Assembly: GCA_004431415.1 (NCBI GenBank)
Contig: QPMI01000032.1
Span: forward strand, 1 to 64,000
Direction of reading: 5' to 3'
Length of the DNA stretch: 64,000 nucleotides
DNA from: Cyanophora paradoxa CCMP329
Taxonomy: Eukaryota > Plantae > Glaucophyta
Shown here: positions 6,701 to 62,549 of the stretch, one piece after another
Layout of the letters: each line of letters opens with the position of its first letter
Numbering within the stretch: the first letter of the stretch is position 1
Made by a program: the position numbers and the translations under genes
The notes under the pieces: generated by a model
What the model was told of the DNA's origin: nothing
Databases searched by the model: none
Seen by the model: only the letters and a program-made list of their open reading frames with translations

Positions 6701-6902
6701 TTAGCGCGAAGTAGAGGCGGCACCGCGCCGTCGGGAAGGACATCTGAGTAGCGAACCAGGAGGCCGCCATCACCTTCCTGCGAGGGGCCCTGGTCAGCGC
6801 TCGGCGGGGGGCGCCGTGCAGCTTGCGAGGTCGGCGCAAGCGTATCAGGAGGGCAGCGCACGTGATGACGACCCCCCTCCATCGCTCTAGCGCGCCCGGC
6901 AT
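3733..6902 (-). CDS. Multi-exon hypothetical protein, mostly Ala/Pro/Ser/Arg low-complexity, with a small helical N-terminal region
   Basis: Long minus-strand open frames (3518-6502, 4266-4805, 5743-7038, 6588-6902) that join at plausible splice sites. Ordered segment GYLTRELGLPTRVLDDQDWAAMDREKERLRKRCLECWP...LSLLEELTRAVWRSV. Start and stop are uncertain. Confidence 0.5.
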
Positions 6903-7111
6903 CCACCGAGGGCGCCGGCTCGAAACAGCTTCCGAGCTGGGTACGGCAAATTATAAGCTTGGTCGCTGCACCACTCCAAACGCGCCGAGCCGACTCCTTC
7001 CGGCCTGCAGAAGCTAGCTGCCTGCTTCCTGGCACCATGCGTCCCCGGAGGCAAGGATAGCGAGCGAGCTAGACCAGCACAGCAGGCGGCGCACCGAGCA
7101 CCGTAGCTAAG

Positions 7112-16100: not shown

Positions 16101-18401
16101 CCCCCCCCCCAGCCGCCGCCCCCCGCCCCGCCCACGAAGAGGGAAAAGGGAAGAGGCTCTAGCGATTGAATTGGGCTCTAGCTATCTAGAGGCTATCCTC
16201 GCCGTGCGTGGAAGGGGAGCGGCTCCCGGCGGCCTTGACATCTAGGCTAGGCACTCGCCCACGGGACGATGTCGAAGCGAAGAGAAGGGAAGAGGCTCTA
16301 GCTATAGAGCTGTGGACATGCGCGACAGCCGTCCGCCCCCACCCGCTCTCAAGGAAAGAGAGGAGACCATCTAGAAACTAGAAGCGCGGCTTAAGGGCTC
16401 GCGCCCCTCCCGCGCAGGCGCTGCGGATGTACCGGCAGAGCAGATCTAATCTCTAGAGGCGCTGCAGAACTTTAGACTAATCACTAGATGTACTAGATGT
16501 ACCTGGTGATCGGAGACTAGATTCTTAGCTCGCGCTCCCCCCTCCCGCGCGTGCGCAGGCGCTGCGGATGTACCGGCACGCGACGGAGCAGGCGCCGGGG
16601 GCCCTACCCGGCGCCGACGCCCTCGTAGCCCCCGACCGGTCCGCCCCGCCCCGCCCACCTTCTCCCAGCTTCTCCTAGCCTCTCCCAGCCTTCACCCGGC
16701 CTTCTCGGAACTCAAGTTTGGGCTAAGAGGCTAGGGTCTTCTCTAGCTCCGCCGCGCCCCCGCCACGCTGCGCCCCAGCTCACTCCACTCGCTCGACCCT
16801 CGCTCACTCAGGTTCGTGCTGTACGCGCGGGTCGGGGGCCTCGCCTCGTCGCCCTCGTCGCCGGCTGCGGCGCGCGCGGCGGCCCCCGCCGACTTCGACC
16901 AGCTCGAGGTCGCCTGGCGCCGCTCGGGGGTGCGCGCGTTTGTTTCTGTCCCGCGTTTCCAGCCCCGCCCCTTGCACTTCCCTTTTCTCCCTTTATTCCG
17001 CGCTACGGTTACCCCCCCTCCGCCCTGCTCCCCGCTCCCTTCCATTCCATCCGCTCCCTTCTGGACCGCTTCTTTCTGGGACGGCCGCCCGCCGTACCCC
17101 CCGCCGCCCCCTTCCACTCGCTCCCCCCCCTCCATAGCTTCGCTTCTCAGCTTTGCGAGCGCGCTGTACCCCCCCCGCTCACCTTTTCCGACGCCCTTCC
17201 CCCTTAGGCGTGGGTCGAGCGCGCCCTGGAGACCCTCGACAAGTACCAGGCATGCGCACGCGTACCCCGCCCTCCCCCCCCCCCCCCTCTTACCCCGCCC
17301 CGGCAGCCGGCGGAGATCGACCTGTGGGGCGCGAAGGACGTGGGCAAGCCGGGGCCGGCCGACGTCGTCCGCCGCATGGGGCGCTCCCTCTCCACCGTGC
17401 GCTACGCCCCGAAAGCTAAAACATAGCTAAAGACATCAACATAAACATAGCTAAAACATAGCTAACATGGCTAACTAAAATGGCAAGCGAAGCGAGGCAA
17501 GCTAGTGGCCCCGAACTAGACTCAAAGAGCTGATATATATAGTAAACTAGAGCCAATAGGCGTCCTCAAAGTCCCCCGGCCCGGCCCTCGCCCCCCCTAT
17601 CGGCCTTCTAGCAAACCTGTCGAAACGACGGCCCCGCCCTAGCTACGCTTACTCGCTGTAACGTGGACCAAGCCTTGGCTGACGACACCCCCCCCCCCCC
17701 CCCCTCTTTCCCTCCCTCCCGGCGGCCGCGCAGCTGCTCTCGGCGCGCAACGACTTCGAGACGGCGCTCCTCTGCTTCCTCCAGCTCATGCGCACCCTCC
17801 GCGGCGCCGTGCGGACTTCCCCCTCACTCGGCTTAACTTCCGCTCCGCCTGAAGCCCCCCTTCTAAAATCTAGCGATGTCATAGATACAAACGCTCATGC
17901 GCACCCTCCGCGGTGCCGTGCGGACCTTTCCCTCACTCGGCTTAACTTCCGCTCCACCTGAAGCCCCCCTTCTAAAATCTAGCGATGTCATAGATACAAA
18001 CACTCATGCGCATCCTCCGCGGCGCCGTGCGGCCCCCCGCCCTCCCCTCCCCTCCCCTCCCCTCCCCTCACTCTCCGCTGAACTTCATCTCCCCTCTAAA
18101 TCTCGGAGCTCCCAAGCTTCCCCTCCCCAACTAAAATAGAAAACTAAACTAAGACCCTCTATAACCTCTCTATATAAACTTCCCCTTCCCCTCTAATATA
18201 AACTAAACTAAACTAAAGCCCCTCTATAAACTCTTGGAGCTCCCAAGCTTCCCCTCCCCAACTAAAATAGCCGCCGCGCAGCTCGCGGAGAAGGGCGCGG
18301 TGGACGCGGTGGACGCGGCGCTCGCGGGGGAGGGCCCCGCCGCGCCGGCGCCGGCGCCCGTCCCGGTCCTCCAGCTCGCCCCCTCCGGCTCCGGCTCGTA
18401 G
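7112..18401 (+). CDS. Large multi-exon coiled-coil protein with an axonemal dynein light chain (p28/AXDND1)-like segment and a C-terminal EF-hand-like motif; candidate ciliary protein
   Basis: ATG 7112 to TAG 18399-18401 across >25 exons. AELYNVAFDEALA/QVCEACQGAAADHLRSAW (~8160-8345) resembles the ELYSQCFDELIRQVTINCxERG motif. Coiled-coil exons (RELLRARNHITELESELATMR; ERLALLNRIEELEGENRR). Spliced LLRDFDDSRTGAISAAQFLALCRHL (15895-16050) is EF-hand-like. Confidence 0.55.
17785..18030 (+). repeat. ~110-bp tandem duplication (about 2.3 copies) spanning an exon end/donor site
   Basis: ctcatgcgcaccctccgcggcgccgtgcgg...tctaaaatctagcgatgtcatagatacaaac repeats at ~17785, ~17894 and partially ~18003. 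Differences are mostly CG>TG/CA. Confidence 0.85.
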
Positions 18402-18833: not shown

Positions 18834-20500
18834 CTACAGGCTTCTATATCTGATCTCTATGCCCTTGTCGAGGTAGTTGCACTCGTAGGTACCGCATTTC
18901 CCCATCCAGCGGAAGGAATACACGGAGACGAAGAGCTTGGAGCCGGTGCTCGTGTAGCGCGCGGCAGACCCCGAGGCGCTGTCGTAAATGTCGGAGACGG
19001 TACCCTCGAAGCCGATTTCCTTTATGAGGCTGGCGGAGCCGTCTTCGCCGTCGCGGAACTGGGCAGGATGCAAAGAAAGATGAGCGGGGGGTGCTTTCAA
19101 GGACTGGAAATCCACGCACCTGCATTCGAAGCCCGACGCGGTTCATTTCGCCTTTGAAAGACATGGCATCGGAAGCTGGATCCTGATAATACTGTGCGTA
19201 CGACAGATAAAACTCGATATTTCCCGTGCCATTTCCCGTGCCGACGTCCGCCGTGATGCGCCTGCGGCGAACGCAAAATCGGTGACAGAATCCAGATCTA
19301 ACAAGCTTAAGTCGACGTCGATCCGAATACTCACCAGTGCGTTGCCATGTTGGACGTGGCATTGAATGCAATCGCAGCCTCGGTCGCAGTCGCTGTGACT
19401 GCTGGCGGATTCACAACCGCGAAAGCTGCCTTGAAGCCAGTGAAAATCGGAATGCCGTAAGTGGCCTGCTGCTGATCTCCGACAGCGTTCCACCGCGGAC
19501 TTGTCTTGAAGCTGACGACGATACGGCTGGTCGGAGACACGAATTCCCGCCCGTAGTCGAGGTCAAACAGCCCATATTGCGTAGCGTTTGGTGAAGCCAG
19601 GAGCGAGGGCGGCGTCCCGGTCGTATTTGCGAAGTGCGCCGCGCTATCAAAGCTGTAAAGCTGCGCGCGGTCTTCAGAATTTGGGACACTTACAGGATAA
19701 TTAAGTAGGCATAAGCTCAGCGCACAGAAACAACATCCGGACAATCCCCCCAGGAGTCCTTGCATTGCAGGTGATTGGTTCCCCAATTGTATTCACTGCT
19801 GAAGACGTCCACCGTGGAGAAAGAAATTTTTATGAGGGACCCCGTCGGCGCATCCACCACCCTGCGCGAGCGGTCGTGTCGGTGCGTAAGCAGGGTTTAG
19901 TTATTTGATCTCCGCTTTATTTCGACTCCTCGTACCAGGTCGATTCCTTATTGAGGAGGTACCCGCTCGCGAAGGTGTAATCGAGTTCCTTGGTGGGGGC
20001 CGCGGAGGAGAGCGCGATAAGCTCGAAGCTCTTGACTCTGGCCGTGAACCCTTGAAGGTTCTTGTAGTTGTCCGAAGTGAAGCTTAGGAAGAGCTTGGAC
20101 TTGAGGACGCGGAGCGTCGTCTTCTCGGGTTGCCCCGACAGGAAGCCGCTGAGGCGCTTAATCTCGCCGCTGTCATCGGATATCTAGGTTCAAAGCGTTC
20201 GCCCGCGCCGGATTAGAGGATGGAAACGAAGGCACATCGCAGGATATTTCGCGTTCCCTCACCGAAACAAAATCTCTCCCATACTCCGTTGAGAACGTGG
20301 TGAACTCGAGCATGAGTCCATGCCCTGCTGGCGCGGTGATGGTCCTGCAAAATCGCTGGCGTCAGAATTGAAAAGCGCGCAGGGCAAGGCAGGTGCGCGA
20401 CCGCACCACTTCTCGTCGGCGTTAATCTTGTAGCGTGAGGCACCACTGCTGTCCTGGAAGTTCAGCCACGAGTTCGAGTTCACTTCCAGAAGAGTCGATC
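18834..20500 (-). other. Three tandem CUB-like domains at the receptor C-terminus
   Basis: A: YKINADEKW|TITAPAGHGLMLEFTTFSTEYGRDF..ISDDSGEIKRLSG..KLFLSFTSDNYKNLQGFTARV. B: VVDAPTGSLIKISFSTVDV..FVSPTSRIVVSFKTS..FTGFKAAF. C: ..YTSTGSKLFVSVYSF..KGIEIRY*. Confidence 0.8.
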
Positions 20501-23500
20501 CGTCCGAGGCCTTGGGCTGCGAATTCAAGCCCCCGCGTTAACGTTCGCAACACTCATGATCAAGGCTGCAGCGCGGACTAACCGTGGCAAACGAAGCCCA
20601 ATCAGCGCCGCTGGGTAGAGGGTGCGGCGCGATCCAGTCTTGGAAAGCGAGTGGCGTATTCACGTCCTTTGTGCCGACAAGGCGGAACGACTCGAGGTCG
20701 GGCAGTGGCGGGTCGGATTCGGCAAGCGACGTGGCTTCGGCCACGGTCTCGGGAGATTTTCCCGAGTCGCTTTGAACGAAGGCCCGGCACGAGTACTTCG
20801 TGAGAGGGGCGATGTTGGTAATGTTGGTCTCCGCGACGAGCAAGCTCGGCAGGACGCTCGACCTGCGTTCGTCGCTTCAACGGTCGCGACCGTCAGGGAA
20901 GAAGCTAGGGCGCATGCGCACCAGTACCGCCGCGACGCGCCGCAGTCCAGTGCGAGGTGAGGCTGGGCGGGGCTCGCGGTTGGGTACAGGTACGGCCGAC
21001 CCGTAATCCGCATCGGTTGCTCTACCGTTTGTGCGCTCTGTCCTTCCGCAGTGCACGTCACCGTGGCCGTCTTGGGTGCATCGTCGCCCGAGAACGTGTT
21101 GAAAACGAAGACTGTCAGTATTCTAGCTACGGACGTGCCGACGCGGATATTCTCCGGGACGATGCGGACGATAGGCGCCGAGGGAGCAACAGTCTGGCGC
21201 GGGGCATCCGGAGCCGCGTAGAGCGCTGCGGAGGTATCTTGCGCCTGGGATGTGAAGTTCGCGCACATCTTCGACTGAGCGCTGGATGCCGCCGTCCCGT
21301 TTCCGGTGCCGTAGACGCTCTCAAGCTCGGACGGAGAGAACGTGCGAGAAACGAGACCGCACGCCGCGCGGACGATTGTGTCTTGGGTTAGGTCCTGAGC
21401 ACGAAATAATGAGACAGGAAGGAGAATTCAAACTTACATAATATATTTTGCATCAATATTAATGTCGGAATGCGCATACCATGATGCGGAGGGCGAAGTT
21501 GCCGAGCATGTCCCGATACCGCAGCGCGACGTACCGCCTGCGGAACTCTGAATACTTTACGAAGCTTTAATTTCGAATAGCGGCGCAATGCAAAGGGCAC
21601 CCGTCGTCGCTGAGAATGGCCCTGGCCGGTAGAAGCTGGCCTTCGTCGACGTACCCGTCGTTTACGGGGATGCTGCGAGCGTTCTCAAAGGCTCGCGGGC
21701 CGTCCTCTAGATCCACGATGAGCAAGACCGTGAGAGACTTCCAGATCGCCAGGAAACGACCTACGCGCGTGTTTCAGTCACCGAAATTATCACCAAACGA
21801 AATTCAAGGAGACGAACCATTTTTAGAGGCCCGCGGGCCGTAGCGGCTGCGCTGCGCGAATCTGAACTGGATTGTTGGCGTTGGTTCGCGGTCGGGCAAG
21901 TAGTCGGGTTGCTCCGCCAGTGAGACGTTTACTGGGTCGAGATCCGACGACGCAAAGCCGCGCGCGGCTATCGCATCGACGACCCACAGCGTGCTCCCGT
22001 CCCTCGAGATGTAGAACGAGCAGTCGACTGCAGGTCTCGTCAGCTCGTTTGTGGCGCGCGCGATGCATGTGCATCACGCGGGGCGCACCAAACCCTGTGC
22101 TGCTCCTCGTGTTCTTTGCGAGGCGATGCTTGGCGTTCTGCGGCCATGGCCAGGGACGCTTGGCATTTCAAAGATGATGGGCGTATTAGAGAACGCGCGC
22201 ACCTTGAAATCGAAGTTGTAGTCCTCGTCCTGATCCTCCGTTTCGTCGTACTTGGCTTCCAAGCTGAGTTCAGGCGCCGCGAGATCTGTGAAAAATATAC
22301 AGGCACCTTGTCAGATCATCGAAAACGGAGCTAACGAGCTTTATATTGTGCTTGCCTGAGGTCTGCGGGAGATGCCGATAGACGTCGGGCTTCTCGACGC
22401 TGACCACCAAGATGGCGCGGCGGAGGTCGACGACCAGAAGGCCTGCAGTCTCCCAGAACGCCAGACGCCGACACGACCGAAGGCGCTCCTCCTTCAACGC
22501 TGCCTTCTTCGGCACGGGCACTATCGCCGACTGAGGAACGCCCCAGCTGCCGCTCTGCAGATGTGAATGAGCATCACAATGCATATATGACATCGATCGT
22601 ATCCATCGAATCGCGGACGCACGTCGTACTGAGCCACAGCCAGCATCACAACCTCTGCGGCCTCGGAGAAGCCCGAACGGCTGCCGGCCACGGAGCCATC
22701 CTTCGGACAGAAATGAGTTCCCGAAGGGCAGTTGGGCGCGAGGCCGATTGCCGTAAAGTTCTCGTTCTTCGGGATTTTCGTGACGAAGTGCTTCCAGGAT
22801 GGCTTCTCGTCGAAGATGATCGACATAGCACTGAAACAAAACGCGCAGCGTTTTCCGGCGCTGTCAAAGGCGGCAGCGTGTTGCACATCTTCGAAAAGAA
22901 GCAAGAGTCGGTCAGAACAAAGCGCAACTGGTGATCAAATATCGGCAGGCACCTGCCATCTGTACATGAATCGGGTTCGCATTGCCGCTGTGATCTCTCT
23001 TCCATTCTAGCAGGACTCTCGACGGGGTCCACAAAGGTTCGAAAGCGTCTCTCAAGCTCGGCTTTGCTTCAAAGATAGCGAAAGAATCCTTCGTTCCATC
23101 CGGGACCCGCGACTCCTACGCCACAGATTGTGAGTCAGAGATGACGGGCAGGGCTGACTAATCGCATGACTTGCCACGTACCTGGGAAAGTTTGTAGATG
23201 ACTCCGGCCATTGCAGCCCACTCGCCGGAGGCGTCGAAATCCATCGGCTTGTACGGCTCCGAAGGGGACGGGAAGAAGTTGGCCTGGTGCCCTCCAAGGA
23301 GCCCCGACGGGGCAGGTCGCGCGTAAGTCGAGTCTGGATACGTGGCGAACGTTTGCGGGTCGAAAGGCGTTGTTTCCCCGGCGAACGGCTCGAAAACGTG
23401 CGGCGCAGAAACGGTCGCGCCGGTCGACTCGATAGTCTTCGTGGACGCCGTCCATGGCCAGGGCTGGGCCGCGCTATCAGTCCGCCACGTCCTGCGCAGG

Positions 23501-26500
23501 TCGCGAAGCGATAAGAGACATTAACATTAACAGTCTAACAGATTCAGTATTTGACACACCAGCGGAGCGCGGGGGCAATTATGTTGGGGAACTGGCAGCC
23601 CCTTCCACTGGCACCCCTCAGCAGCGTCCCTCCGGTAGCGTTTAACGCCAAGAGATGTCCTGTTTTCGGGTGCTCGGCAAAGACTGCGCGTGGAGCGAAG
23701 GCGAGTGCGTGTGAGGGTTTCTGATTATATTATTCGGCATAAAGGTTTAGAATGCAATTCTGCAAAATCAGCGCACATCGGTACTTGTTGGAAGCGTCGT
23801 TGCAGTCTCGGCACTGGTCGCGGAACTCGAATACAGGCCGCCTGAATTTGGGGTGGGCAATCGCGACTTTGGGGAAACAACGCACAAGAAACTGACCCCA
23901 AAGTCGCGTCAAGAGTGTGCTGCATGGTTTGGATGCGGACAGGCTTGAGAATCTGGGTGGGCTGAAGCCGGTGGAGTTGATTCGAGTCCGGCCCGTCCAG
24001 TTCCCAGTAAGCTCCTATGCTCTGTCCGACGAGAAGGAAGTGGCAGTTGCCTCCGTTGGTGAGAAACAGGCCGCTGCGACGATCGACATTTTTAGTTGTT
24101 AACCCGCGTCATCATTCGAAGATGACCGATCACCTGTTTGGCCCAAGGTTGTTCTGAAGAGTGGAATCGTATCCTGCATCAAAGACGCTGAGTGTCTTGG
24201 AGTTCTCGTCGAAAATCGACTGCAGCACATTGCCATCGAAGAGAGCAGGGGACTGCACGCACAAGCTGTCAGAGTCAGACACAGAAAGGCAAATGCCAAA
24301 GAAAGCTTGCCTTGGTCTGGATCGTGATGCCCCCGCTGACCTTTCGAAGCCCTACCCGAGCGAAGTTTCCGCCCGAATCGGCAGCTATGAAATCCGACGA
24401 GTCAGAGGACCCGACGAGCGAGCGGATGTTGTCGCTCAGCGGCTTCAAAGTGATCTGAAGGCGCAGCGTCAGATCACGCTTTATATGCAGCTCTCCCACA
24501 ACAAAATTAAAAGACAGCACCTCGTGAATTCTTCGCAGGTCGCTCGACGGCCGAGTGTCGTGCACGGAAAACTCCCCGTTTGACTTTCCGACGGCCACCA
24601 GAGGTCCTCCCCCGAGCAGCAAGACCTGAGTATCCGAAGAGAAATCAAACTCATGAATGTGAGAATGATACCAGATAGACTCACCGACATGGCCTTTCTG
24701 CGCAGGTCGGATGCGGATCCCGTGTATGCAAAGCCGCACTCGAGATCCGCCACCTCCCTGCACGAATTCGAAGAAGCTCATGCACAGCTCATGCACACAT
24801 ATATGATGTGAAGGACACTAAATTAAAGCTAGCGAAAAGCTTCTCACCAGAAAGCAGAGTCGGCGTTAGCCTCTCCGTCTTTCAGAGGTTCCAGTGGAAT
24901 GAACACGAGCTGGTGCCGCACGCACGAGCCCGCCTCCGTCTGAGCGGACACGGATTTCCGTAGAGCCAGGGCTCCCAGCCCGCCAGCATCCGATTTGGAC
25001 TGCGCATGCGTGTCATAGGTTAGAGGGCAGTGTATGGTGCACGTGGCCGCTAAAACCTCCCATGGCACGGACCGTCCGCTTGTCCTGATCGTAATACATG
25101 AGGTCGATGAGCACAATGTCTGAACGAATTCGAAGGCGTCACAATGTCATGAAGCAAAATTAAATATTTACAGCTTATATAATTAAGGTTGCGCACCGGG
25201 ATCCGCCGCGTGAACGTTACCAGGCAAGTTTTCGCGGAACGCCGGGTTGTTGCTAAGGGAGAACTCGAAGGGGTAGACTCTGCGTTCGGCGGCGGTGGTG
25301 GCTGCTGCATTTGAACCCGATGCGGCTCCAGATTCGGATGCGGTGAAGTTTGTGCCGAAGATGCCGTACTCCTCTTGATACCAAAGCGTGCAGACCACAT
25401 CCTTCGAGATGCCGCAGCGTGTTTGTGCCGCGCTGATGCTCAACGTGTTGCACACAACCTCAATGTCGTTGCAGTCGACTTGACTGTCCCGGTCGGGGCA
25501 GTAGAAGTAAGAAATGTGCGGGCAGTAGGAAGCAGGTTGCGAGCAATAGTAGTCTTCGTAGTAGCAATTATAATCGAAGAACTGCAGAAGATTGCGTTTG
25601 TGGCCTTGACGCCGGGCCGCCCGGGCGATGCGTGGCGTTGGCTTGACGCTTGGTGTCCGATCGCGACGCCCTCGCAGCATCCCCCGCTTCCGAACCCCCG
25701 GAGAGGAGGTGGGGTACGGATCGGGCGAGCTCGTGGTGTACGGGTACGGGTCGGGCGAGGTGTACGGGTACGGGTCGGGCGAGGTGTACGGGTACGGGTC
25801 GGGGGACGTGTACGGGTACGACCCGTAGGGGTCGATGGCGGCGCTGAAAAGGTCGTTAAAGACCTTGGCGTCTTCGTCCGCCAGACCCTCGAGCGACACA
25901 GAATCAGGCACGAACAGCGTCTGCCCGAGCGGCTTCCAGGGCGTGAGAGACGCCAGGCTCCCCTCAGCCAGCTCGCCCTCCTCGTCCACACTGGGCCCGT
26001 CAAAGCCTCCAAGGACCAGGATCGACATAGAATAGTTCTGGTAGGTCTTCGTGCTGTTGAAGCGGCCCGGAAGAATCTTCTTCGGCGTGTACGTCGCGAA
26101 GAGGTGGTACGAGTGCGTGTCAAGAGTCGCCTCCTTTGTCGAGAAACCTTTTTTAGGTTTATTTCATTAGCGCTTAAGCTTATAATAACGTTTACTGTTT
26201 ATTTCATTAGCTTCGTTTGCGCACGCACCGTCCTGGCGGACGACGCCCACGACGGCGGAGCAGTCTCCCGCGACGCGGAGGTCGGACATGCCGAACGAAG
26301 CCTGCATCGCCGGGACAAGGTTGCGGTAGTACGACCCTTGGTCGGTCGTGCGGCGGTAGCCGTTCTCCGTGACTTTGACTCCGGATATGTCAAGGGAATA
26401 GTGCGTGTATGTCGCCTCGAGAGCAGCCGGGGAGACCGATGAGTCCGTCAGCGAAGCCACCGGGATGAAAAAGAAGCTGCCCTCGCCGGCCGCAACCAGG

Positions 26501-29500
26501 TACGTCTTGTTGGCATGAGTGCACGTGCCGTTCCCGGATGCGAATTGGAAGGCGGCGGGGTACGGGTACGATGCTTCGGCAAAGCTTGCGACGTGTTTAG
26601 GGCGGAGGCGGTAGGCAAACGGCCGCTCGAAGGATTGCGTCCCGAGCGCGAGCTCGGCCCCAGCGAAGGCGTCGGTCATCATTTCGGCAGTTTTCCACGA
26701 GCTCGGAGTAAACTGGCACAGCTCCGGACTGCTGGGAATGTAGCCTGCGCATGGCGGTTTTCCAAAACGCGAACGCCGCTGCATTCAGAAAGAATGCAAT
26801 CACATGCAAACGCACCCGCGTACGGAGCAGAGCTCTTGTCCTTGAAAGTGAGCTTGCCGTGGTGGATGCGAAGGGCGATGCGGGGAGCGAGGCGCGGCGT
26901 GTGCATCAGGTCTGGGTGCTTTGCCATGCAGTACGCCGTCTCAAGCTGCGGGCTCGCGGGGAAGAACCGCCAGGGCTCCAGCAAGTAAGCGGTCTCCCAA
27001 CCTGCGTGCGCGTTTCTCTCAGAGCTGATCTCTCAGATCAGAGAATCGCGCCGCGGCGGGAGATCGAAAGCGAACCCTTCCAGACGCCTTCGAGCTTGTA
27101 CTCTTCAGTGCCCCATGCGAATTGTGAGTAGTACGTCGTGGCATTGAGGCCGGGCACAAGCTCGTCCAGTGTCGAGCTGCGCATGCTGGCCTTCGTGGTG
27201 CTGTAGCTGTACGGAACAGACTCGGCGGCCAGCACGACGACTGTGTTGTTTCCTGCGCAGCCGCGGACGTCAAACCGCACTTGCTTTAATGCAAGTCTTC
27301 TTTATGAATGGAGAGGCGAATTCACACCAATGAAGACGTCGTGAATGTCGAGCAGGTAGTGATTAGAAACGGGATCCTGCCGTTCGAGGCATCCGCGCTG
27401 CTTTGGCTTCTCCTTGCTGTAGATGATAAGGACGCCCGTGACACGGGGCAGGCAGCCGAAGCCGTCGTCTTGGCACACTGGCGTCGAGCGTGTTATAATT
27501 AGAGTGCAAAGCGTGTTAGCGTGCAAGTCCTCTTACCTGGTTTCTCGAAGCCCATCCGCCTGTGCGCGCGGGTGAATAGTCGTCAACAAAGTTCAGAATG
27601 CAGGATTAATTTCGATCGAGATCATTTTGATCATGAGCTTGCTCTTCGGCGCACCGAACGTGGATGAAGACATCGCCGTAGTTGTCTACGAGGATGCGCA
27701 TCGAGGAGAGGTAGTGAGGCCAGAAGCTCGTCTTGTTGGGGCTTCCCGAGAGCGTGTCCTCGATAGTGTGCGACAGCTTCATGCTGCGGCCTTCGAAGAC
27801 TTGCGCCAGGAGCTTCATCTGAAAAACATAAAATGTAACTGACGTGACTACAATAGACCGCTGACCAAAACGCTGACCTGAAAGGTATCCTCTGGGCGAG
27901 ACGGGTTCCGGCGAGACGCAGCGGACGTTGTGGGCGCGACGATGCCAGCTGCGGCGATGACAGTGAACTGGTTGTTGGGCGAGCTCGACGTGAACGTCTG
28001 CAATCGCTGGTCAGATTCTCTTCTTCGAAAACAATATGCGTCTGCAGCAACTGCGCGCCTGGAAATCGAAGAACGAGCGGCTGTTCGCGAATTCCTTGAT
28101 TGAATAGTCGCTCGTCACTTCCTCGAAACCTCCGTCGGCACGCAGACCGCGCCGCCGGCGGGCCCCGGTGCGCGCTCCCCCCGTGTTGATGAACTGGGAG
28201 CTGTAGCTCTCAAGGATCGAGCGGAGGGTGTCCTCGGCGGCCGCGGCGACTTTGGCGGCGGCGGCCGTCATGTTGGTCCCGCTGCGGCTCGAACCGAGGG
28301 CCTCGAGAGCGTACAGAAGCGAGAGCTCTGGATCCTTGGCCGACACGGCTGCAGAGATGCTGCGCAGGATATGTTTATTTATAACAAGCGTGGGAGGGTA
28401 CGAGCTCACCTGGAGCGGTCCGTAGCAATTTTGGCTTGGATTTCCGCCTCTTTCTGAGCGGCGACGGCGAGCGCCTGCGCAATTTCGGCCCTTTGCTTTG
28501 CAGTGAGGGCCTGTTCTCGCGAAAGGATAGCCTCCAATTGAGCCTGTATCGCTTCGTTCTTAGCTAAGAGGGCCGCTTCGGCGTTGGCTGTCGCATTCTG
28601 CCAGACGGCATCAGTCTCTGCGTTTTCGTCTACAATGCACGCGCAAGCAAGGATACCTTCTCAGCTAGCTCAGCGGCTAGCTGTGCAGCCTTAGCTTCGG
28701 CCTCCTTCTGTCTAGCGAGCTGCAGCCAGAATGCGCGACCGTTAGATTGCAGAACACGGTGCGGGGGCACGTGCACGGTGCTCAAAGCCGCACCGCCGCA
28801 GATTCCTCTGCCTGCTTCTGCGAAGCTTCTGCCTGCTGCTTTGCGACAGAAGACTGAACTGGATCGAGACCTCAGTGAACGCAGCATAATCGAAATATAT
28901 TGGAACGCACCAGCCAGCACAATGGAGACGATGAGTGCAAAGGAAAGCACTGCACATGTGCACGAAAAATAAATCAGATCGATCGACATCGACGCTAGAT
29001 CTTGCGACGTGCGAATGACACCCCCGAACGCACGCGTGATGACGATGAGCGTGATGATGGATTTTATGCGCTTCTGTGCGTTTGCATCCTTGACGCTGTG
29101 CCTCACCAGGACCTGGCGCGGGCGAAACACATAAAAACCGCAGCTGCGAACAAATCACATATCATCGAAAACATGATGTCGCACAAAATGTTCCGCAGTC
29201 GGTTCCTGGTTTTTGGTTGCTTTCTCCTTGTCATCTGCCATTTTCTCATCCTACGCTCATCAAGTGAGCGAGATATAGATATATGGAGCGATTGAGATAT
29301 ATTTGTGGCGGCGCACTTTCGAGTTCCCTGCACCGGCGCCCCCCAGGTTTTTCAGTTTTTTGAGTTGAGCCGCTTTCTTCGATGCTGCGATCCAGCGCTG
29401 CGCAAGCGACGCCGGCAGAAGGTCCGGGAAGGTCAACCCACGGCTTCCCGCTTGCTCCGGGTCCGTCTTTTTCAGCCAATCGTGCGCCTCCTGTCAACGG

Positions 29501-32500
29501 TAAAGCAGAAGCCGCATCAATATTAATATTGGAATGTTGACAGTTTCATGTTCGCTCGCGGCGACGGGCCGGGAACGCTGGAGCGCACTTGAAGAGCGAA
29601 ACCCTTCAGCAAGAATGCACTTGCTTTCTTGCGCTTTTCCTTTTCTATCTGCGGGGGCACAGAAACTTTGTAATGCGGGGAAAATAATGAGGGTCCTGGC
29701 GAACCGTGCTGAGCATGGTATCGGCATCATCGAGGCTGGTCCACTTTCTCTCCGGGTCGATTCCGAGAGCTGGCAGTACGTATACAGACAGTGCCTCAGC
29801 AAGCTAAAGGCTAAAGCCTCCGAGTAGCGGCTCTAGCATTTCGCACCTTCCTTGTACTTGTCCACGCGGAGAGTCAGCTGCGTGTGCAGGCGGGTGCCTT
29901 CGACATCGAGCTAAGGAACGCCAGTCAATTGCAAGAAGCCGTCGCCTGCGGGGGCGATCGATGAGCGGGAGCAGTTACCTTGATCGCCTCGATCATGTTC
30001 TTGACAGATTCATTGAACCGATCGAGTTCGTATATCTCGAACTTCTTGTTCTGCGCCTGCTTGAGTTGGTCGAGTTTTTTGGAGTCAAGGTGAAGCAAGT
30101 CCACGAAGTCGATTTTCTGCCTGCTCGCGATCGGGCCAGAGTCGGACCGGGGCAGCAGAAACCGCGCGCTGGGCGCGCGTGAGCTGCGGAGCAGGCGTAC
30201 GGACCAGCGGTAGATCTCCTGCAGGGTCATCTTCTGTCGTCTGCCATATACAAGGCTCTTGATTAGAACGATCGAAGCACGAAGCACTGCGGATATGCAT
30301 ATGCTATAGTCGATCTTATATTGTGCCACACCGCCAAAAGCCCTCGGTCATGCTCTTCTTTTTGTTCTCATCCGGTTCTGCGTCGATCTCATCTTGTGAA
30401 GGCGGGAAGTCTGGCACCGTGACCATTTCCGACTTCAACGGATACTCGTACTGGATCTCTCCCCTCTCGTCTCGGATCGGGACTCCGTGCGCGTCTCTCT
30501 TTGGTTTCCAGTTACACTCGACAATGACCATTCGCTTCTGCTGCCTCTGAGCGTACTCGAACTCTGCGGCGCGGGCGTTAGCGGTGCGGATCCGGAGAAA
30601 CATTAACTCCACTAGTACTTATTACAAGGCTTTCGTCTCACCGTCGATACTGAAGAACCGAAGGAGAGGAGCGTCGTCGTTCGAATCAAGCTTTAAGTTC
30701 GAAACAGTTGGAATAATAAACGTACCAGTAGGGAGACGTGATCCACTCTGTTCACGAGAACGTATGTCAGCTAGCGCACAAATCATGGCCCGCGCGCGCT
30801 CAATGCAAGGGACTCGCCCTGAGTGAGTAGCACGAGAACTGTTGACGAGCCCTTGATCGCTGCGTAGGCGCGTATACGTACGTGCACGTGAGAAACGGTT
30901 TTTGATCGAAACAAAAACGCCAAGGCGGAAGCGGGCGCTTGCACCGGCCGCGATGGATTTGCCCCTGTGAGCGGGAATGTCAGCTCAGCAAAGCCGAGCT
31001 CGAGGCGCGCGAGCGGGAAGCCTCTAACTAAAACAAGGCGCACCATTGGACACCCTTGAGAATTCCTGACAGATGCGCGAAGAAAAGCGAGACCGTGCGA
31101 GACTAATTCAGCCTCGTGGATTCAAACCGCGATGCAAATTCAACAGCCGCACCGTTCTCGGTGTTTACATCGACCCAGAACTTGCCTACGCCGTTCTCCT
31201 TCAGGATCTTGCACAAAACATTCATCTCGCTGGTCTGCGCGCGCTTGTAGCTGTACACGCATCGGGACGCATCAGCAGTCGAGCTCAAGCGTTCTGATTT
31301 AAATTTAGAGTCGGTTCAGCAGAGCCTGCGTACGAGATCATCACATCATATGTGTTGATGGGCGTTCTGGCGTCGGGCTCGACAACCGAACTCCCGTAGG
31401 GCTGCGGTTCCACCCAAGCTTGAGTTTACACACGCGCACGAGCAGCAAGGATATATAAGGATATTGAAACATGTTTAAGTTATGTTCAGTTTTATAAGAG
31501 ATAGCAACCAATGCTTTTACTTCGAATTCGTTGTTTAAATAATCGCGTGCGCACCCGCATCTCTTTCACAAGCGATTCAAGCGTCAGGTAGTATTCCTCG
31601 CCTGCGCATCAAGCTTAAGCGAAGATGCATATGGCAAGAGATCTCGATTCGCATTCAAAGCAAGAGAATCGGAGTCGCTCGCCTTTAAGAGCCTTGAGGG
31701 GACGTGCGCTGATTTCTTTGAGCTTGCCCGCAACTTCGGCGGCCCAGGTGTGGCTGCCAGCCGCGGCACAGGCCTCCAAAGAAACCCCGGAGCCGATCAT
31801 AAGGGGAATCACTTTACGCGGGAGCAGCAGGGCGTGTTTAACCTCCCGAAGGCAGGCCCTGCCAGGAAGTTGGAGAAAACGCGGCTCTGCCAGGAGTTGC
31901 AGAAGCTGTCACTCACTGCGACTGGAAGAAGTCTGCATATGCATGCACTAATCGTCAGCGCAGCGATAGCGATCCACGCTCGGCGTTCTCTGACCTTTGC
32001 TGACGATGACGATGACGCACTCGGATCCCTCGATGGCCGCAGAAACTCGCTTCCGGCTGCCAGCATAGAATAACGATCGTCACCAGTGCGTATGCAGATG
32101 TACAGATCTAGAAAATCACTGCCAATGCGCACCGCGATATGTCTGTGATGTCTCCTTTGTCTTCGGCGCCCCTCCGATCGAACCAGAGCTGTGGAAAGAC
32201 GTCACTCGCACGTGGGTATGCACATCCGTCGCAGCTCGTGAAAATCGCAACAGCTTGCCCTCAGGCCATGCTTCTCCAAGTCGGATGTCAGGGTATCCAC
32301 ATGCTTGCGGTCGACTTCGACTCCGCGAGCGTAGCACACAAATCTGCACAGCCGAGTGCGCCCAGAACCTTCATCAGATGCGCAATAAGAGGTACCACGG
32401 TTCGGGCGGAGTCGTTTCGGCCGCACGCGTCGAGGAAGTCGACGGCGTGCTCGGGACGCGGGTCCGGCAAAGGCATATGGTCGTAGTCGACAAAGGCTTT

Positions 32501-33300
32501 CGATGCCATTCGGAACTGCGTGCACGTGTGTGCGAGCACACGTTAAAAAAGGCGCTGCCGGAAGGTTGCAGCGTTGCGACGCGGACCGGTTGGTGCTTGG
32601 CGGACGAGCGCGAACGCTCCACTGCCGGGGCTCCGTCAACCAAACCTCTCATTCCGAATTCGTTCGCTCCGTTCGGCGAGAAGGACACCGAAGGCGACTT
32701 CGGATTGCCAGCAAAAGCCTGATCATGAGCATGTACGCGAGGTGGGTCGGAGCCGGTCATGATCATCAGGATGCGATATGTAAATGCAGCTAGAGTTCGT
32801 TTGGAACTTTGAAGTGCAAATAGCTATAGTACTCGCACCGGCTCCGCATGCTTAGACGATCGCGAGTCCCGGAAACCCGACCGGCTCGAGTGAAGGCTGG
32901 GGCCAGATCTCTGCGCATGCGGTAACATAATATTAATGGTGTAATTAAACGCTGGCATATCAATCGACCCACATCAAAGGATTTGAACGCTACTCGCGCG
33001 CTTATCGCACGCGCACGCACCACCTGCACCCGAACGTCATCCGCTGACACCGGCCAAGGCGCGCTTGCCGGGTCCGCCGTCAGGTAAGCGGCCTGACTGG
33101 GATACGATGGCGAGGTGCCGTCCATCGCGTAGGCGTAGCGCTTCTGGTTCGGAGAAGCTATTTTCGAGCTACGGGCCGGGCTGCTGCCGCGATCGCGCGT
33201 GCGCGCGCTGGGACAGCCCGAACTAATCTGAGAGTGCTACACTGCGTGCGCGTGTCTGATCTGCAGCTGTCCAGCAAGCTTCTCGTTGTGCATATGCTGC
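18834..33300 (-). CDS. Giant type II membrane receptor: TIR-TIR / bacterial-type linker / TM / coiled coil / degenerate beta-propeller with Cys-rich inserts / FN3 / 3x CUB
   Basis: Manual splicing gives TIR1 and TIR2, then a continuous in-phase frame from the post-TIR2 linker through the TM (KRIKSIITLIVITLLSFALIVSIVLA), coiled coil and DPELSLLYALEA. Further ectodomain exons follow on the same strand to TAG at 18834-18836. The 5' start (33100-33800), the TIR1-TIR2 junctions and some mid-ectodomain junctions are unresolved. Confidence 0.75.
20700..21200 (-). other. Fibronectin type III-like domain
   Basis: APSAPIVRIV...TATVTCT...ETNITNIAPLTKYSCRAFVQSDSGKSP matches the FN3 'I.NL.P.T.Y...V.A....G.S' motif. 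Confidence 0.65.
25713..25825 (-). repeat. 24-bp coding tandem repeat (PDPYPYTS)x~4 in the receptor ectodomain
   Basis: ORF 25183-26028: YPYTSPDPYPYTSPDPYPYTSPDPYPYTTSSPDPYPTSSP. Confidence 0.9.
28910..29070 (-). other. Single transmembrane helix of the TIR receptor (N-in topology predicted)
   Basis: KRIKSIITLIVIT|LLSFALIVSIVLA|V across two introns. Basic residues lie on the N-terminal side (positive-inside rule) and an Ala/Gln/Glu coiled coil follows. Confidence 0.8.
30510..31270 (-). other. TIR domain 2 (TIR_2-like), includes 22-nt and 8-nt microexons
   Basis: CVYSYKRAQTSEMNVLCKILKENGVGKFWVDV...AYAAIKGSSTVLVLLTQ|EWITSPY|CID|EFEYAQRQQKRMVIVE. Microexons 30726-30747 and 30642-30649 have AG/GT flanks and restore SPYCIDEFEYA. 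Confidence 0.88.
31790..32345 (-). other. TIR domain 1 (TIR_2-like), five exons
   Basis: Spliced: FVCYARGVEVDRKHVDTLTSDLEKHGLR|LWFDRRGAEDKGDITDIS|RKRVSAAIEGSECVIVIVSK|DFFQSQ|ACLREVKHALLLPRKVIPLMI. Matches the TIR consensus FISY..D...L...L...G..VW.D...AI..S..VI.V.S..Y..S..C..E...A....K.VIP. Confidence 0.9.
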
Positions 33301-36483: not shown

Positions 36484-39400
36484 ATGTCGGCACAGGCTGC
36501 CGATCGGCGTTATTCACTCCTTACGCATGAATGGATGCATAACGTGCGCTTATGATTCATTATATATACGTCGAAGCTCATGATCATGCATGAAATTAAA
36601 ACGATGATACGCGTGTACGTGTGCAGCTTGTCGACCGCAAGTTCCGCCACGTGCGTTTGAATGTGTTCCGGGCGGAGCTGTATCTGCTCGCCTTCCGCTC
36701 CCGCAAGGTGCATTAATATTGATGTTGCTCAAGATCGGAGGGAGCTCGAGCTCCGCAGCCACATGCCCCCTGTTGAACGCTCGAGCTCTCAGCTGTACTG
36801 GAACCTGATATGGCACCTCGCGTTTTGTACGCTGTTCTTCGCGCTCATTCTCATCTTCCTCCCCACCGATACGGCGAACGAGGTGAGGTAGCTACAGGAT
36901 CTCAGCTGGATATATATGGAACTCTGCATACATATGCATGCTCACGCTTGCTCGCGCAGCACGCGTCGCAGCTGGCGGGAGAGGGCGCACTCTTCAACAT
37001 CATTCAACTTGGAAGCGACCCGGAAGCCTTCCTAGCTGTCTCTCAGGTGCGCATGCCGCGTTGCTGATCTTTAGCGCTAATTATAACTTTCGCGATTCAT
37101 GATCATGATCATTGACATCGATTCTCGTACTCGCACTCGCTTTCTGCAGCATGAAGATTTCTACAACTGGATCAAAAGGCGGTTGCTGCCCCTTCTGGAG
37201 CCGGACAGTACCCTTTCGGGATACATGTGCGCGTGCAATCGTCATCGAAAAACGTTGTCAAGGATCGCTTGTAAACATAAAGTCGCAGGCGGCCGGTGGG
37301 GCTCATTCGGATCCGTCAGGTTTGCAATACAAATTCGATGCTAATCATAAGAACATGTAGCTTACTATCATGCACATGATCACGATATAAAAAAATGCAG
37401 GTGCGGGTGAAGCCGAAAAGCGACTGCAACTCCAATCCAATCACTCTGGTATCCTCCGTCTTCTACCCCGATGCGTGCGCGATGCATGTGCATATGCAAA
37501 TGGTTGCCATCGATATGCATCTTGCCATCACCGAGTCGATATACATCTTCATACATATGGTGAACACGCGGTACCGCGCAGGCTGTGCTTCCCCCCATAC
37601 GATCCGAACAACCTAGATGAGCGGGCTCCAATCACTGGAGTTTTAACAGGCCAGATATACCAGTGGGAGGTGAGACTCCAGAAAGCCAGATTCTAAAACC
37701 GTCAACGTTGGCCCATAATCACGTCGTCTCCTGCAGCCGGAGCGGGCGTCGCTGTTCGGCTCCTACACCTACTGGAGCTCCTGGCCGTCCTACGGCAATG
37801 GCGGCTACGGCGTCAACCTCGACCCGCGCAACCACTCCGAGACGCTCCGAAAGGCACCAGTCTCCCCATGGCCACGGGTACCGCGTCGCTTCTGCTGACT
37901 TTAACGTTGAATTCGATTCCAGATCGAAGAGCTCGAGAGGGACAGGTTCCTTGACGGTGCGTGCTCTTTAATTTCTTTTAGATTGCGAGCTCGCAATTCG
38001 CAAGCCGACGGACTGCGACCGCCAACGCCCAGAGTCCACGCGTGCCGTTGCGCTTCACATGGCTTTGTACAATCGGCACACCCGCGTTTACGTGGTCGTC
38101 GACGTCGGTGCGGATACTTCCCGCAGCATTTCTATCTATAGGTCTAGGTCATGGGCATTGCAACGTTGAGGGGAATTGTACATGCTGCTGATGTTCATGT
38201 ACCGCGCAGGAGTTGAAAGTTCCGCTCCAGGTGCGATGGCTTCAATCCGCCCATCTGTACATGTGTTCCCGTCCGGGATTTCGAAGAAACCTCACCTGTT
38301 CCGCAACAGGACTCTTCGTGACTTACTACCGCGTCCGTCCAATGCGGCTGCAGCTGCTGGAAGACAGAGTATGGATCGGCTTTAGGAAACTTGCGTATCC
38401 CTCATCATCACGATCGCAATCGGCAGGCTCTCTTCGGATTCTGCATCCTCTTTATCATCGGAATCTCGTACTTTGGTTCGCGACCGCCGTCACAGTTCAA
38501 AGCGAGATTTGCGTGCTCTAAATTCTAATTTGTTCGCCCTGGACAGCCTTGGGCGAGGTCTGGGAGCTTGCCAAGTCGCTTCACGACAACAAGGGTCGAA
38601 GCTACTGCAAGGACCCCTGGAACTGGGTCGAAGTGAGAGAAACCGAGATTACCGCTCCTTTACTTTAAATTAGTATCCCTTATCCAAATCTGACCGTGGC
38701 CGGTGCCTTTCAGATCTCGATTCTAACGATCTTTGTCGTCGTCGTTTGCTACTGTGCTGACTTCATCGTACGTCGCGTTAACAAAATCTTTTCATCGCTC
38801 TGATTGCGACGTCGACGTCGTCATCAGCACGAGAGCCGACGCATTCGCGATGCCCTCGCGGCGGATGCAGTGAACTCCTATATCGATTTCCAGCAAGCGC
38901 GGCGCATTTCGGAGGTACTTCTGTAGCTATATATCATCTTGCACGCCGGATAATGCGGATCAAACGTCGCGATCGCACCTGCACCTTGCACAATTCACCA
39001 CACACGCTAACAATTACGATTTGAGCAGATCCTTACGGACCTTGTTGGCCTGAACATCCTCCTCCTCATCCTTCGTAGCTTCAAATTTCTTCGGCTCAAC
39101 TCAAAGCTCTCAATCGTGTGGTGCGCCAGCACTCCTGCAGCTGATCGGGTTTTCAGACATATCTCCTGTCAGCGCTTCCGCGGTCTGCGGAAACTGTCTT
39201 GCGATTAATATTCGCATCTGCAGGACGACCCTGAGCCTTGCAAAGTTCGATCTGCTCTCTTTCATCTCGGTCGCGATCATCATATTTGCAGCCTATGCCT
39301 TCATGGTTGGCAACCCCGAGGATTTACGTATATTTTGCTATCGCTGACGTCGATGGCTTCATCGCGAGCAGGGATACGTCGTTTTCGGCTACCAGGTTAC

Positions 39401-42400
39401 CCGGGTTCGCTACATTTGCGCACAATGAACTCGAATTTTGAAACAATCTCAAGATCGATCGCTTGGTTTTTAATTTCACCACAGTTCCGGAACTTCACCG
39501 CCTCTTTCGCCGCTCTGTTCCGCTTCATTACGGGGTTCGTGGACATAAGACCTCTTGCACAATCGCCTGATGGCAGCCGCCAGCGATTCGGATTACGAAG
39601 CGATCCAGGCGTCAAGCCCGTTCACGGTGCGCGATTCCCTAGCCTAGCCTCCGCATTGAAAGTGGAGCTGAAACGCATGAACGCAATATTCCAGGGCTAC
39701 ATTTTCTACACCACGTGCGTGGATTCGGCTAGCGCTGTCTAGATCTATCTCGTGTGCATTCTTGTTTACTAAACCTGTCTCAGATTCGTTCTCTTCGTCG
39801 CCTTGGTGCTGATCAACATTTTCATCGCCATCGTGGTGAGCTGGCTTTGATCTCCACTAGTCTAGGTATTGTTGTGTTGCTTGCGGCTACTGACAATGAA
39901 ACTCTTCAGAACAAATACTACGAGTCGGCACTAGACGCGGAAGAGATCATCGACAATCAAGAGAAGGAACTTCTGTGAGCGCCTCATGATCAAAACCCTG
40001 TCGATAGCTAGCTAGAGCTTCTCTCTGCACTTTTCTTTAGCGCGCACCAACATCGCCATTTGCAGAGGTCCAAATCGCATGCATGACTTCCAGCGGCTAT
40101 TGTTTCCGCCGTTCGGGGAGCAATTCAAGTGCTTTGCAAAGCGCATTGAAAAGCAAACGGCTGAGGCATCCGCATCCGGAAATCAACTCGGCCGAAAATC
40201 GTCGCAGGCATCCGTCGAGACTCCGAAATACATATACGTAAGCGCCATGTTATTTCGAGAAGAGTAACTTCGAGCCGATTCCATAAGAAGATTTGGATCG
40301 AAAAGCGCGAACACAAAGTCGTCGTCAAAAGCGAAAAAAAAAGTGATGGCGAAAAGAAGAGCGATGGCGAAAAGAAAAGTGATGGCGAAAAGAAACTCGA
40401 TTGCAAGTGCAAGCAGATGTGCGAAAGCCATCCTGAATTCACGCTGAAGTGCGCAAGCTACGCTCTATTCGTCACAATTTCAACACCAGAGCTCGTCCTG
40501 AACTCGCGATGTCGACAGAGGCTCGGATGGTTCTCGGCGTTTCCTTCTTCGCAACATTGAAGAGGTGATCGATATTAGTGGAATTTAAACCCCCCGGATT
40601 TGCTGATCGAAATGGCATACATTACAATGATGGCGGATAATCGAAAACAGGATGACGAGCTTATTCTGGAGGTGGCATGATTTGATCCTCTCTGCAATGC
40701 CGTCCGCGTCAAACAATAACCGATGCTTGCTTGCTTTCAGAGCTCAAGATATTCCTCCGACGCAAAGGATGGAGCTCGAGGAAGGATCGCGTGCAAAATA
40801 ATACAGGTCTGCCTCCAGATCGGGCGCGATCTTTCTGCGACGTCGACGCGCACAAGCTTAAGAGATCACGCTGAAGCTCGATGTGCTGACTGCCCTTAAA
40901 TTTCTTCCACACAGATTGCAAGCAACGAATGCGGGCGGTTCATCAAACTGGAAAACACCCACGAATCATCCCTCGGGGTATGCATTGTGTTCCTGCTTGA
41001 ATGCTTTTATTGGACCCGACTGTTTGAGCAGCCCCACGCATTTATAAACATCCGGATGCCGGTTTTCCAGGCGTGGTTCAGGGTGCGCGCGACACGCACA
41101 CTATGCAGAATGCATTTATCAAGCAAGCGCGCGAGCAGGTGATCTCTAAAATGCTGATGCCGACCCGATCCCGGTATTCAAGGTTCGCAATCGGAGCTTG
41201 CTTGCTTTCTGCTTCTTTATCTACAGGCGCCGGCGTGACAAGAACAACAGGGCGCGGAAACTGCTGCGGACAATCCGGGATCCCACGACAGGCAAAACCG
41301 CTGAAGATACATCACGATGGTCGTGGGAGAAATGGTTCGAAGCTGCCAGTGTGCATTCTTCGAGTTCAGATTTAATCCGAACTGATAGGTGGGATCGGTG
41401 GTTCTACCAAGGTATTCTCGACGAGGACGAGGTGAGGCTCTGGATCTTTGTTCTCGCGAGGTCAAGGCGAACTTGCTAGATGTGAACGTTTACCAAACGC
41501 ATGCGCACCCAGATCGAAGAGACGATTGAGACTCTGGCGCGAGAAGCCCGAGACGCCCGGAAAAAGTACATGCCCGACGAGGTAGGCTCAAAGGCTCAAT
41601 TGAAGACAGCAGATTCTCACCCGTACGCGTTCGCGATCGTGTGTGGCCAGAATTTCTTGCGGACGTTTAGGATCGAAGACGTGCTTCAACAGCTATACCG
41701 CGTGCGTTGAAGCTGCGCTCTATAATAAAAAAGAAGACTCAAGCTTGATCTGCTTGATCTGATGCGCAGCTGGATGAAAGCCTCAAAAAGGAGGACGAAG
41801 AGAAGACAAGCGGCCAAGTGCGTCGGCTGATCGAAATCGCAGTGAACCTGGATTTGTGCGTGCACATATGTACTTTGCTACGACATTCATGATCGATTTA
41901 GACTGATATACATATCGCCGTGCTCGGTGCCGGTACCGGTGCAGCTTGTTGAAGGAACTCCGCGATTGCGCCGAGCACGCTCACGACCACAAAAACCTTT
42001 GCGACGACAAGCACACACACAAGCATCACGCACACGAGAACGGCCACGCTCATGATCACCACCCCCATCCTGCGCACGAGGAGAAGCAAAAGACACCCGA
42101 AGAGGAAAAGAAGGAGCAGGAGGAGCTCGAGAAAAAGCAGAAAAAGGAACGGGAGGAGCGCATTGCACGAGTCAACACACTGTACCGGAAGGTGACCCGC
42201 CACCAAATTTAATTTTCCGAAATTTATGCTCGAAGCGCTAAGAGGGCGTCTACCAGAGCATTGCGGAAGCGGAAAGTCTGCAAAATGGGCTCGTGCAGCT
42301 CCGCCTGTCCCAGCTCCATATGCCGGCACGTGCACGTTATCTTTACCTGCGTCTCGAGCTCACTTTTAACCAATCGACCGCATCCACAGGTGAATCGAGG

Positions 42401-62095: not shown

Positions 62096-62549
62096 GTGAA
62101 TGACTACCGATATCTGTCCTCTACAGCTCTTTCGGCCTCTGGCTGGATGTCAAGGTTGGCCGCTGACTTGCAGGGTCCGCGCGGCGGCGGGACGCTGAAA
62201 GAGGCAAACTCGACTCAAGAAAGTGCTCCCAGCCGGAGCAGAGCGACTTGGGCGAGCGAGGCCGACGCCCGCTGGTCGAAGGCCGCTTTGATCAGCGTCG
62301 CACATGTAGCCCCCCGCGGCTCGCCCCCCTCCCCATTGAACTCTCGCCTCGACGAGCTGGGGTCAAGCGACCAAAGGACCACGCCCAGCTCGGTTTAGCA
62401 AGTCTGCTGCAAGCGCTAGCGCGCACAGCCGACCGGAGCGCGGACGTCAGGTGACCGCCAGGTGACCGCGATTCTTCTCCTCTACGCTTTATGACCATCA
62501 CCCCACCATCTGACACGTTTGACACGTGACAGTGTGGCGGCCCGCTTCG

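Follow-up and report, generated by a model that had tools for sequence, protein, structure and literature searches.

We find that a gene on the minus strand of the window, the 64,000-nucleotide stretch of Cyanophora paradoxa DNA analyzed here, carries a frame of TIR domain, linker, transmembrane helix, stalk and cap that our profile comparisons show to be homologous to a bacterial receptor family. It is fairly probable that the encoded protein is a type II single-pass receptor and that its frame, with a propeller at the end, descends from this family.

The earlier note on this DNA described an intron-filled gene, which agrees with a 28-exon model on the minus strand (32509-28059) with a stop-free reading frame over 793 codons and 27 introns of 50-153 nt, all GT/GC-AG. 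The motifs it quoted are present in the frame of this model, on the minus strand and where it had placed them. Exons were joined only for the reading-frame check, position counts and sequon counts, and all comparisons were run exon by exon. Exon 1 (32427-32509) has an inferred start codon at 32509 and no signal peptide recognizable by eye. Downstream, a rough dynamic-programme model adds about 39 exons and an ectodomain of about 2,100 aa (18834-28059, stop at 18836-18834), giving a predicted protein of about 2,900 aa from a gene with about 66 introns; an exact database look-up of an ectodomain ORF returned no record. Bacterial contamination was ruled out by the 27 canonical introns. Intron size and GC are in line with the figures for Cyanophora, where bacterial genes containing 13 and 27 introns are on record (PMC6704402), and transfer with heavy intron gain is ordinary for such a genome.

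The match to the bacterial family was established with profiles built solely from bacterial proteins and scored over all six frames of the window, about 127,900 positions: a main profile of 111 diverse TIR+linker units and a separate tail profile for the post-stalk site. With block edges set by hand and exon borders already known, the main profile ranked the sites at 30017, 29910, 29621 and 29490 first and the one at 29421 second, while the tail profile ranked the site at 28334 first (19.2 bits; runner-up 14.5). A first profile, from proteins picked without reference to any expected motif, placed the same five sites at ranks 2, 7, 1, 1 and 1. The five unit blocks are collinear within 1.5 kb, compared to at most three blocks in 150 column-permuted controls. 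A motif-by-motif match to bacterial TIR proteins had been proposed, to be given up if the linker failed to align to bacterial TIR-WD40 proteins; the blocks do align, and six of them are collinear at ranks 1-2. Over 57 chosen columns, the linker shares on average 31% and at best 42% identity with bacterial units, and bacterial groups share 43% among themselves.

TIR1 (exons 2-7, 31555-32343) has no linker after it. In TIR2 (exons 8-17, 29979-31350), exon 15 holds a long insert and exon 17 encodes strand E and helix E; the TIR2 blocks took ranks 1-8 in the window with the bacterial profiles. Glu is present at the catalytic position of helix C in both domains, at 31845 in TIR1 and in a codon interrupted by the intron 30641-30564 in TIR2, as in 108/111 bacterial units; on this criterion for TIR NADases, both are putative NADases. 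The linker block is absent between TIR1 and TIR2 (best rank there 64), and a TIR without its own linker occurred in 0/156 multi-TIR bacterial proteins. The sole match in a plasmid search with a 24-aa piece of TIR1 was a TIR-linker-transmembrane-stalk-WD40 protein (E 0.4, weak alone), and Pfam, NCBIfam and PADLOC, scanned exon by exon, gave just hints of TIR_2 (E 0.09) and CUB (E 0.07). The first quoted motif (30120-29979) had been read as an element following the TIR; when aligned, however, solved TIR domains cover model residues 1-127/134, which places this motif within TIR2 itself, as strand E and helix E. Helix E directly adjoins linker helix 1, and beyond profile position 135 there is no match to any solved TIR protein from eukaryotes or bacteria.

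The bacterial linker consists of three helices with invariant His, Trp, Leu and Trp and a near-invariant I..S. When aligned to these units, the algal linker keeps the His, the Leu-Leu, the second Trp and the I..S, with Tyr replacing the first Trp. Helix 1 (29847-29910; rank 1, rank 7 with the earlier profile) has the His at 29889 and is followed by an insertion of about 28 residues (29625-29769, exon 19 and the start of exon 20), the spacing from His to LL being 48 here versus 20 in bacteria. The LLxG motif and helix 2 (29467-29621) contain one intron and the invariant Trp at 29478, and both halves rank first. Helix 3 (P..L...I..S, 29370-29421) ranks first with the first profile and second with the 111-unit profile. 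The earlier placement of a P..FI..S motif at 29208/29109 was not sustained, as the ranks there are 16 and 465 and the better match is at 29421 in the exon 29490-29317; the weaker, intron-split P.T...S-like motif (29089-29208) may be a decayed second copy of P..L...I..S.

The single transmembrane helix (aa 566-587, 28912-29061) is 22 residues long, with an 84-nt intron inside, basic residues on its N-terminal side and mean hydropathies of 2.6 and 2.8 in its halves. The stalk (exons 25-27, 28410-28858, about 105 aa) is rich in Ala, Gln, Glu and Lys, coiled-coil-like by composition only, and bacterial relatives carry a stalk at the same position. It is followed by a helical cap (28206-28359), whose DPEL motif at 28334 is the window's best match (10.8 bits; block rank 1) and which in bacterial relatives stands before the propeller. 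ESM features of the cap, a tblastn of the linker and cap exons against plasmids and a search for the motif pattern in viral contigs all returned nothing.

Members of the bacterial family consist of a TIR, the three-helix linker, a transmembrane helix, a stalk and a variable sensor (WD40, CHASE2, dCache, FGE or LRR) that is interchangeable between members. The family is diverse, occurring in six phyla, and large, with >1,000 matches in one search; cyanobacteria are the richest carriers (58/121 matches) and also account for most of the named matches in another search. Its proteins are annotated merely as TIR domain-containing or WD40 repeat proteins, and we found no functional characterization in the literature. 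The linker has no Pfam family and no solved structure, and its comparison with solved structures by sequence and shape gave no clear match (best Z 6.4). It is a marker of a large bacterial family with swappable sensors.

A bacterial origin of the frame is likely from these comparisons, and it is the likeliest origin given the deep diversity of the family in six bacterial phyla and the linker shape search, in which 10/10 family sets were bacterial clusters (among Atlas clusters of at least 50 members). We propose an old horizontal transfer from a bacterium, after which the gene would have gained introns, a linkerless second TIR, insertions in loops and a far longer ectodomain. It is unlikely that the frame instead belongs to an old eukaryotic family, having entered eukaryotes early or being present in several protist lineages, and came to this genome by vertical descent or from another eukaryote. 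The strong divergence and full intronization of the gene would fit such a history, as would the six entirely eukaryotic and uncharacterized TIR clades (PMC13142454). Our exon-level searches are too insensitive for distant eukaryotic relatives: a big profile library (exon 16-17 stretch), a word search (exon 28) and a metagenome scan (exon 21) were blank or gave a chance SusC match, and these blanks carry little weight against eukaryotic relatives since even the best known bacterial relatives are matched by these exons at only 2-13 bits. However, there was no eukaryotic cluster of at least 50 members among the nearest linker shapes, none of the solved eukaryotic TIRs has the linker, and we found no paper on it.

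The frame homology agrees with the bacterial chassis suggested in the earlier note, but its endosymbiotic variant, gene transfer from the cyanobacterial plastid ancestor, is quite improbable. The DNA probably comes from a primary-plastid alga, and cyanobacteria, besides being the richest carriers, hold two of the top three linker scores. Even so, cyanobacteria do not exceed Actinomycetota or Chloroflexota in mean or best score, either for the linker or for the TIR. The cap fits Actinomycetota best (z 4.4, mean 1.26), fits Proteobacteria also better than cyanobacteria, which come last (mean -0.06), and was missed or ranked low by cyanobacteria-dominated tail profiles.

In a receptor of bacterial descent, as we favor here, the TIRs would face the cytosol and the sensor the outside, opposite to the arrangement in a Toll-like receptor. 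CHASE2 and dCache are known extracytoplasmic sensors, and their position after the units in bacterial members supports this topology; sequons number 1 in aa 1-565 versus 17 downstream. About 3.7 kb after the cap lie propeller-like blades that do not score as canonical WD40 (24311-24625; ESM features 0.97, 10/10 named matches in one clan). The WD-like strands reported at 24370-24625 are propeller-like in these features, but a WD40 HMM built on bacterial family members found nothing significant there and Pfam WD40 was also negative. Of a proposed eukaryotic FN3/CUB extension, a CUB-like piece was weakly detected (19936-20169, PF00431, E 0.073), and FN3 was not detected by Pfam; Pfam gave no LRR match. 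CUB and FN3 are not confined to eukaryotes. The ectodomain would bind a ligand or pathogen surface, the stalk and transmembrane helix would then cluster receptors, the linker would hold the TIRs in register, and these, once assembled, would cleave NAD+, signalling or killing the cell, by analogy with SARM1, TIR-STING and amoebal TirC.

It is very unlikely that the same origin led to a silent locus, or to a hydrophobic helix that does not span the membrane, and hence to no surface-receptor role. RNA contigs from four probable RNA runs gave none spanning the gene and one 34-nt chance match only, although contigs of such small runs lose rare transcripts, and the 28 exons are open in frame with canonical splice sites. 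The strong hydrophobicity of the helix, the basic residues ahead of it and the CUB-like and Cys-rich parts beyond it also argue against this. Chance or convergence, in which unrelated helices, a transmembrane segment and an Ala-rich coil merely happen to follow an ordinary TIR, is scarcely credible and largely refuted: the blocks are short (12-19 bits each, none significant by itself), their edges were hand-picked and the cap is Ala/Leu-rich, but the in-order chain exceeds anything from shuffled profiles, the linker retains the invariant His, Leu and second Trp, and two differently collected profiles agree.

More tentatively, we suggest that a whole bacterial transmembrane TIR receptor was adopted by a eukaryote and gave rise there to a family of surface immune receptors that have the reverse topology, cleave NAD+ and carry swapped ectodomains. 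If true, Toll-like surface sensing would have arisen independently in a glaucophyte lineage for which we found no description of receptor immunity in the literature, and the gene would point to a bacterial receptor class not yet studied, defined by an unnamed three-helix linker.

Proteins of the type of Chondrinema litorale WP_284689213.1 resemble the algal gene in having a TIR with Glu, a three-helix linker, a transmembrane helix, a stalk, a helical cap and a propeller (propeller-like blades in the alga) in identical order, and tandem TIRs, two in the algal gene, are common among bacterial TIR_2-linker-transmembrane-sensor proteins. The algal gene differs in its introns, length and CUB-like tail, in the TIR1 without linker, in the insertions in TIR2 and linker and in that no canonical WD40 repeat scores. 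A kinship with TIR/nSTAND-WD40 proteins had also been suggested, and the linker shape does recur in a caspase-nSTAND1-pentapeptide cluster (TM 0.73). However, a STAND NTPase is absent from the nearest family; a simple P-loop pattern found none in the 121 bacterial matches. Unlike nSTAND1 (PF20703) proteins, the algal gene has no NTPase match in Pfam or NCBIfam, and the stretch from TIR2 helix E (aa 393) to the linker His (aa 413) leaves no room for one.

As in Toll-like and IL-1 receptors, one transmembrane helix would link an extracellular sensor and a cytosolic TIR. Those receptors are type I, with a C-terminal scaffold TIR and an LRR or Ig ectodomain, whereas the algal TIRs are N-terminal, retain the catalytic-position Glu and are predicted to have the reverse topology. 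Dictyostelium TirBCD and SARM1 are eukaryotic TIR NADases of bacterial descent and exemplify the domestication of a bacterial TIR in a eukaryote, as proposed here; TirC is a membrane-tethered NADase (PMC13142454). In those known transfers the TIR domain alone was retained and the regulatory parts are new, while in Cyanophora the linker, transmembrane helix, stalk and cap appear to have been carried over as well.

The motif series that the earlier note had likened, motif by motif, to bacterial TIR-WD40 proteins is real and beyond chance. In exon-by-exon scoring among ~127,900 six-frame window positions, the sites at 30017, 29910, 29621, 29490 and 29421 ranked 2, 7, 1, 1 and 1 with a first profile, made from bacterial proteins picked without use of the note's motifs, and 1, 1, 1, 1 and 2 with a diverse profile of 111 bacterial TIR+linker units. 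The five blocks chain in order; column-shuffled profiles reach at most three (150 trials). The cap site at 28334 ranked 1 with a tail profile built from non-cyanobacterial propeller proteins picked by taxon. Three of the four invariant linker residues are kept, the first Trp being replaced by Tyr. Two placements had to be shifted: the first quoted motif is present but belongs to strand E and helix E of the TIR domain rather than to the linker, and the third linker helix exists but lies at 29421, the site originally proposed being weaker (ranks 16 and 465).

The gene runs on the minus strand from ~32509 down to a stop at 18836-18834. Our hand-built model of exons 1-28 comprises 793 stop-free codons and 27 introns (24 GT-AG and 3 GC-AG) of 50-153 nt, median 76. 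Such short, densely placed introns and the high GC agree with Cyanophora paradoxa, whose genome has a mean intron of 86 bp and a GC content of 67.6% (PMC6704402). A rough extension by dynamic programming gives ~2,900 aa and some 67 exons for the full gene. The model places TIR1 from aa 29, TIR2 from aa 193, the linker at aa 406-505, the transmembrane helix at aa 566-587, the stalk to aa 692 and the cap at aa 702, followed C-terminally by the ectodomain. None of the RNA runs searched contains this stretch, which does not prove the gene silent. The divergently placed gene at 36484-44565 (+) gave no Pfam match in the eight ORF pieces scanned. Elsewhere in the window are an ABC transporter ATPase fragment at 47789-48295 (-) (PF00005, E 0.0011), a tandem repeat of three near-identical ORF copies ~423-510 nt apart at 49996-51258, and one ORF with tandem Cys-rich repeats at 62526-63281 (+).

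One hydrophobic helix forms the transmembrane segment, and basic residues flank it N-terminally. We infer that the TIRs are cytosolic and the sensor outside, because bacterial members carry extracytoplasmic CHASE2 and dCache domains, with modest support from the sequon distribution. The catalytic-position Glu is kept in both TIRs and in 108/111 bacterial units. Ligand would cluster the receptors via the stalk, and the assembled TIRs may then cleave NAD+, by analogy with SARM1, TIR-STING and TirC (PMC13142454).

The bacterial family was gathered independently of the note's motifs, starting from a 24-aa TIR1 piece whose one weak plasmid match (E 0.4) was Chondrinema litorale WP_284689213.1. This protein combines three TIR+linker units with a transmembrane helix, a stalk and WD40 repeats. 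A search with its third unit returned 1,050 proteins; within the best 120, those that carried names came from cyanobacteria, Beggiatoaceae, Bacteroidota and Gemmatimonadetes. A linker DNA pattern run on GTDB genomes added 120 loci (matches: cyanobacterial 58, proteobacterial 27, actinobacterial 14, Chloroflexota 11, others 11). Save for a few cut or broken frames, these have a TIR ahead of the linker, and a P-loop pattern occurs in none of them; the DNA pattern itself favours the TIR type. The transmembrane helix usually lies 60-100 aa past the linker His. WD40 repeats occur in 50 of the 82 complete proteins, and the remaining sensors include CHASE2, dCache, FGE or LRR (these and WD40 are seen in collected proteins and loci P0003, P0028, P0029, P0041, L002, L022, L080 and L111). 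Sensors that look TPR-like by eye occur there too, and two Beggiatoaceae proteins (P0001, P0005) carry at least six TIR+linker units in tandem.

AlphaFold on the bacterial alignment gave a TIR followed by three helices (pLDDT 97). The linker had no match in Pfam and no clear one among solved structures; its nearest predicted shapes were bacterial clusters throughout, namely TIR-WD40, TIR-FGE and one caspase-nSTAND1. The last lends some support to the proposed link to nSTAND1 tails, but the NTPase is absent from the receptor gene. The bacterial TIR-linker frame marks a receptor class that has no name and a linker that no Pfam model covers, and our literature search found no paper on the bacterial family or any eukaryotic member.

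The homology of the receptor frame to this family is real. The note's suggestion of an endosymbiotic source found no support: linker identity to bacterial linkers averages 31% (best 42%), the best scores favour no phylum (unclassified 119, cyanobacteria 118, Chloroflexota 109, Actinomycetota 108), and the cap is a closer match to Actinomycetota and Proteobacteria than to cyanobacteria. Bacterial ancestry is therefore likely, through an event that looks old, and the data do not point to a plastid donor. In a tree of the bacterial units alone, phyla clustered without being monophyletic; Bacteroidota units fell among the cyanobacterial ones. No eukaryotic relative turned up in the searches, but since the same exons reach just 2-13 bits against known relatives, these blanks rule out close relatives only. 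The gene (18834-33000) lies in a stretch of 53-60% GC, most of 2000-17000 being 65-80%; this is no sign of recent transfer because the lower GC runs on to ~54000. An old horizontal acquisition of the whole frame is probable. Bacteria-to-eukaryote TIR transfer has precedents, and Cyanophora is on record as having genes of bacterial origin that carry 13 or 27 introns (PMC6704402).

The ectodomain was said to retain WD-like strands and to have gained FN3/CUB modules. Propeller features are present at 24370-24625, but a family WD40 search found no canonical repeats; a CUB-like piece was detected at E 0.073, but no FN3 by Pfam. A long ectodomain exon holds a short Pro/Tyr/Thr/Ser/Asp tandem repeat of ~4 copies at 25700-25830 (-); after it come a basic stretch that looks like a protease cleavage region and a segment rich in Cys and Tyr. 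Compared with the bacterial family, the receptor has 28 aa inserted within the linker, TIR2 also contains a long insert, the segment leading to the transmembrane helix is longer and the ectodomain is several times larger, and whereas a linker follows TIR1 in 156/156 bacterial multi-TIR proteins checked, its own TIR1 stands without one.
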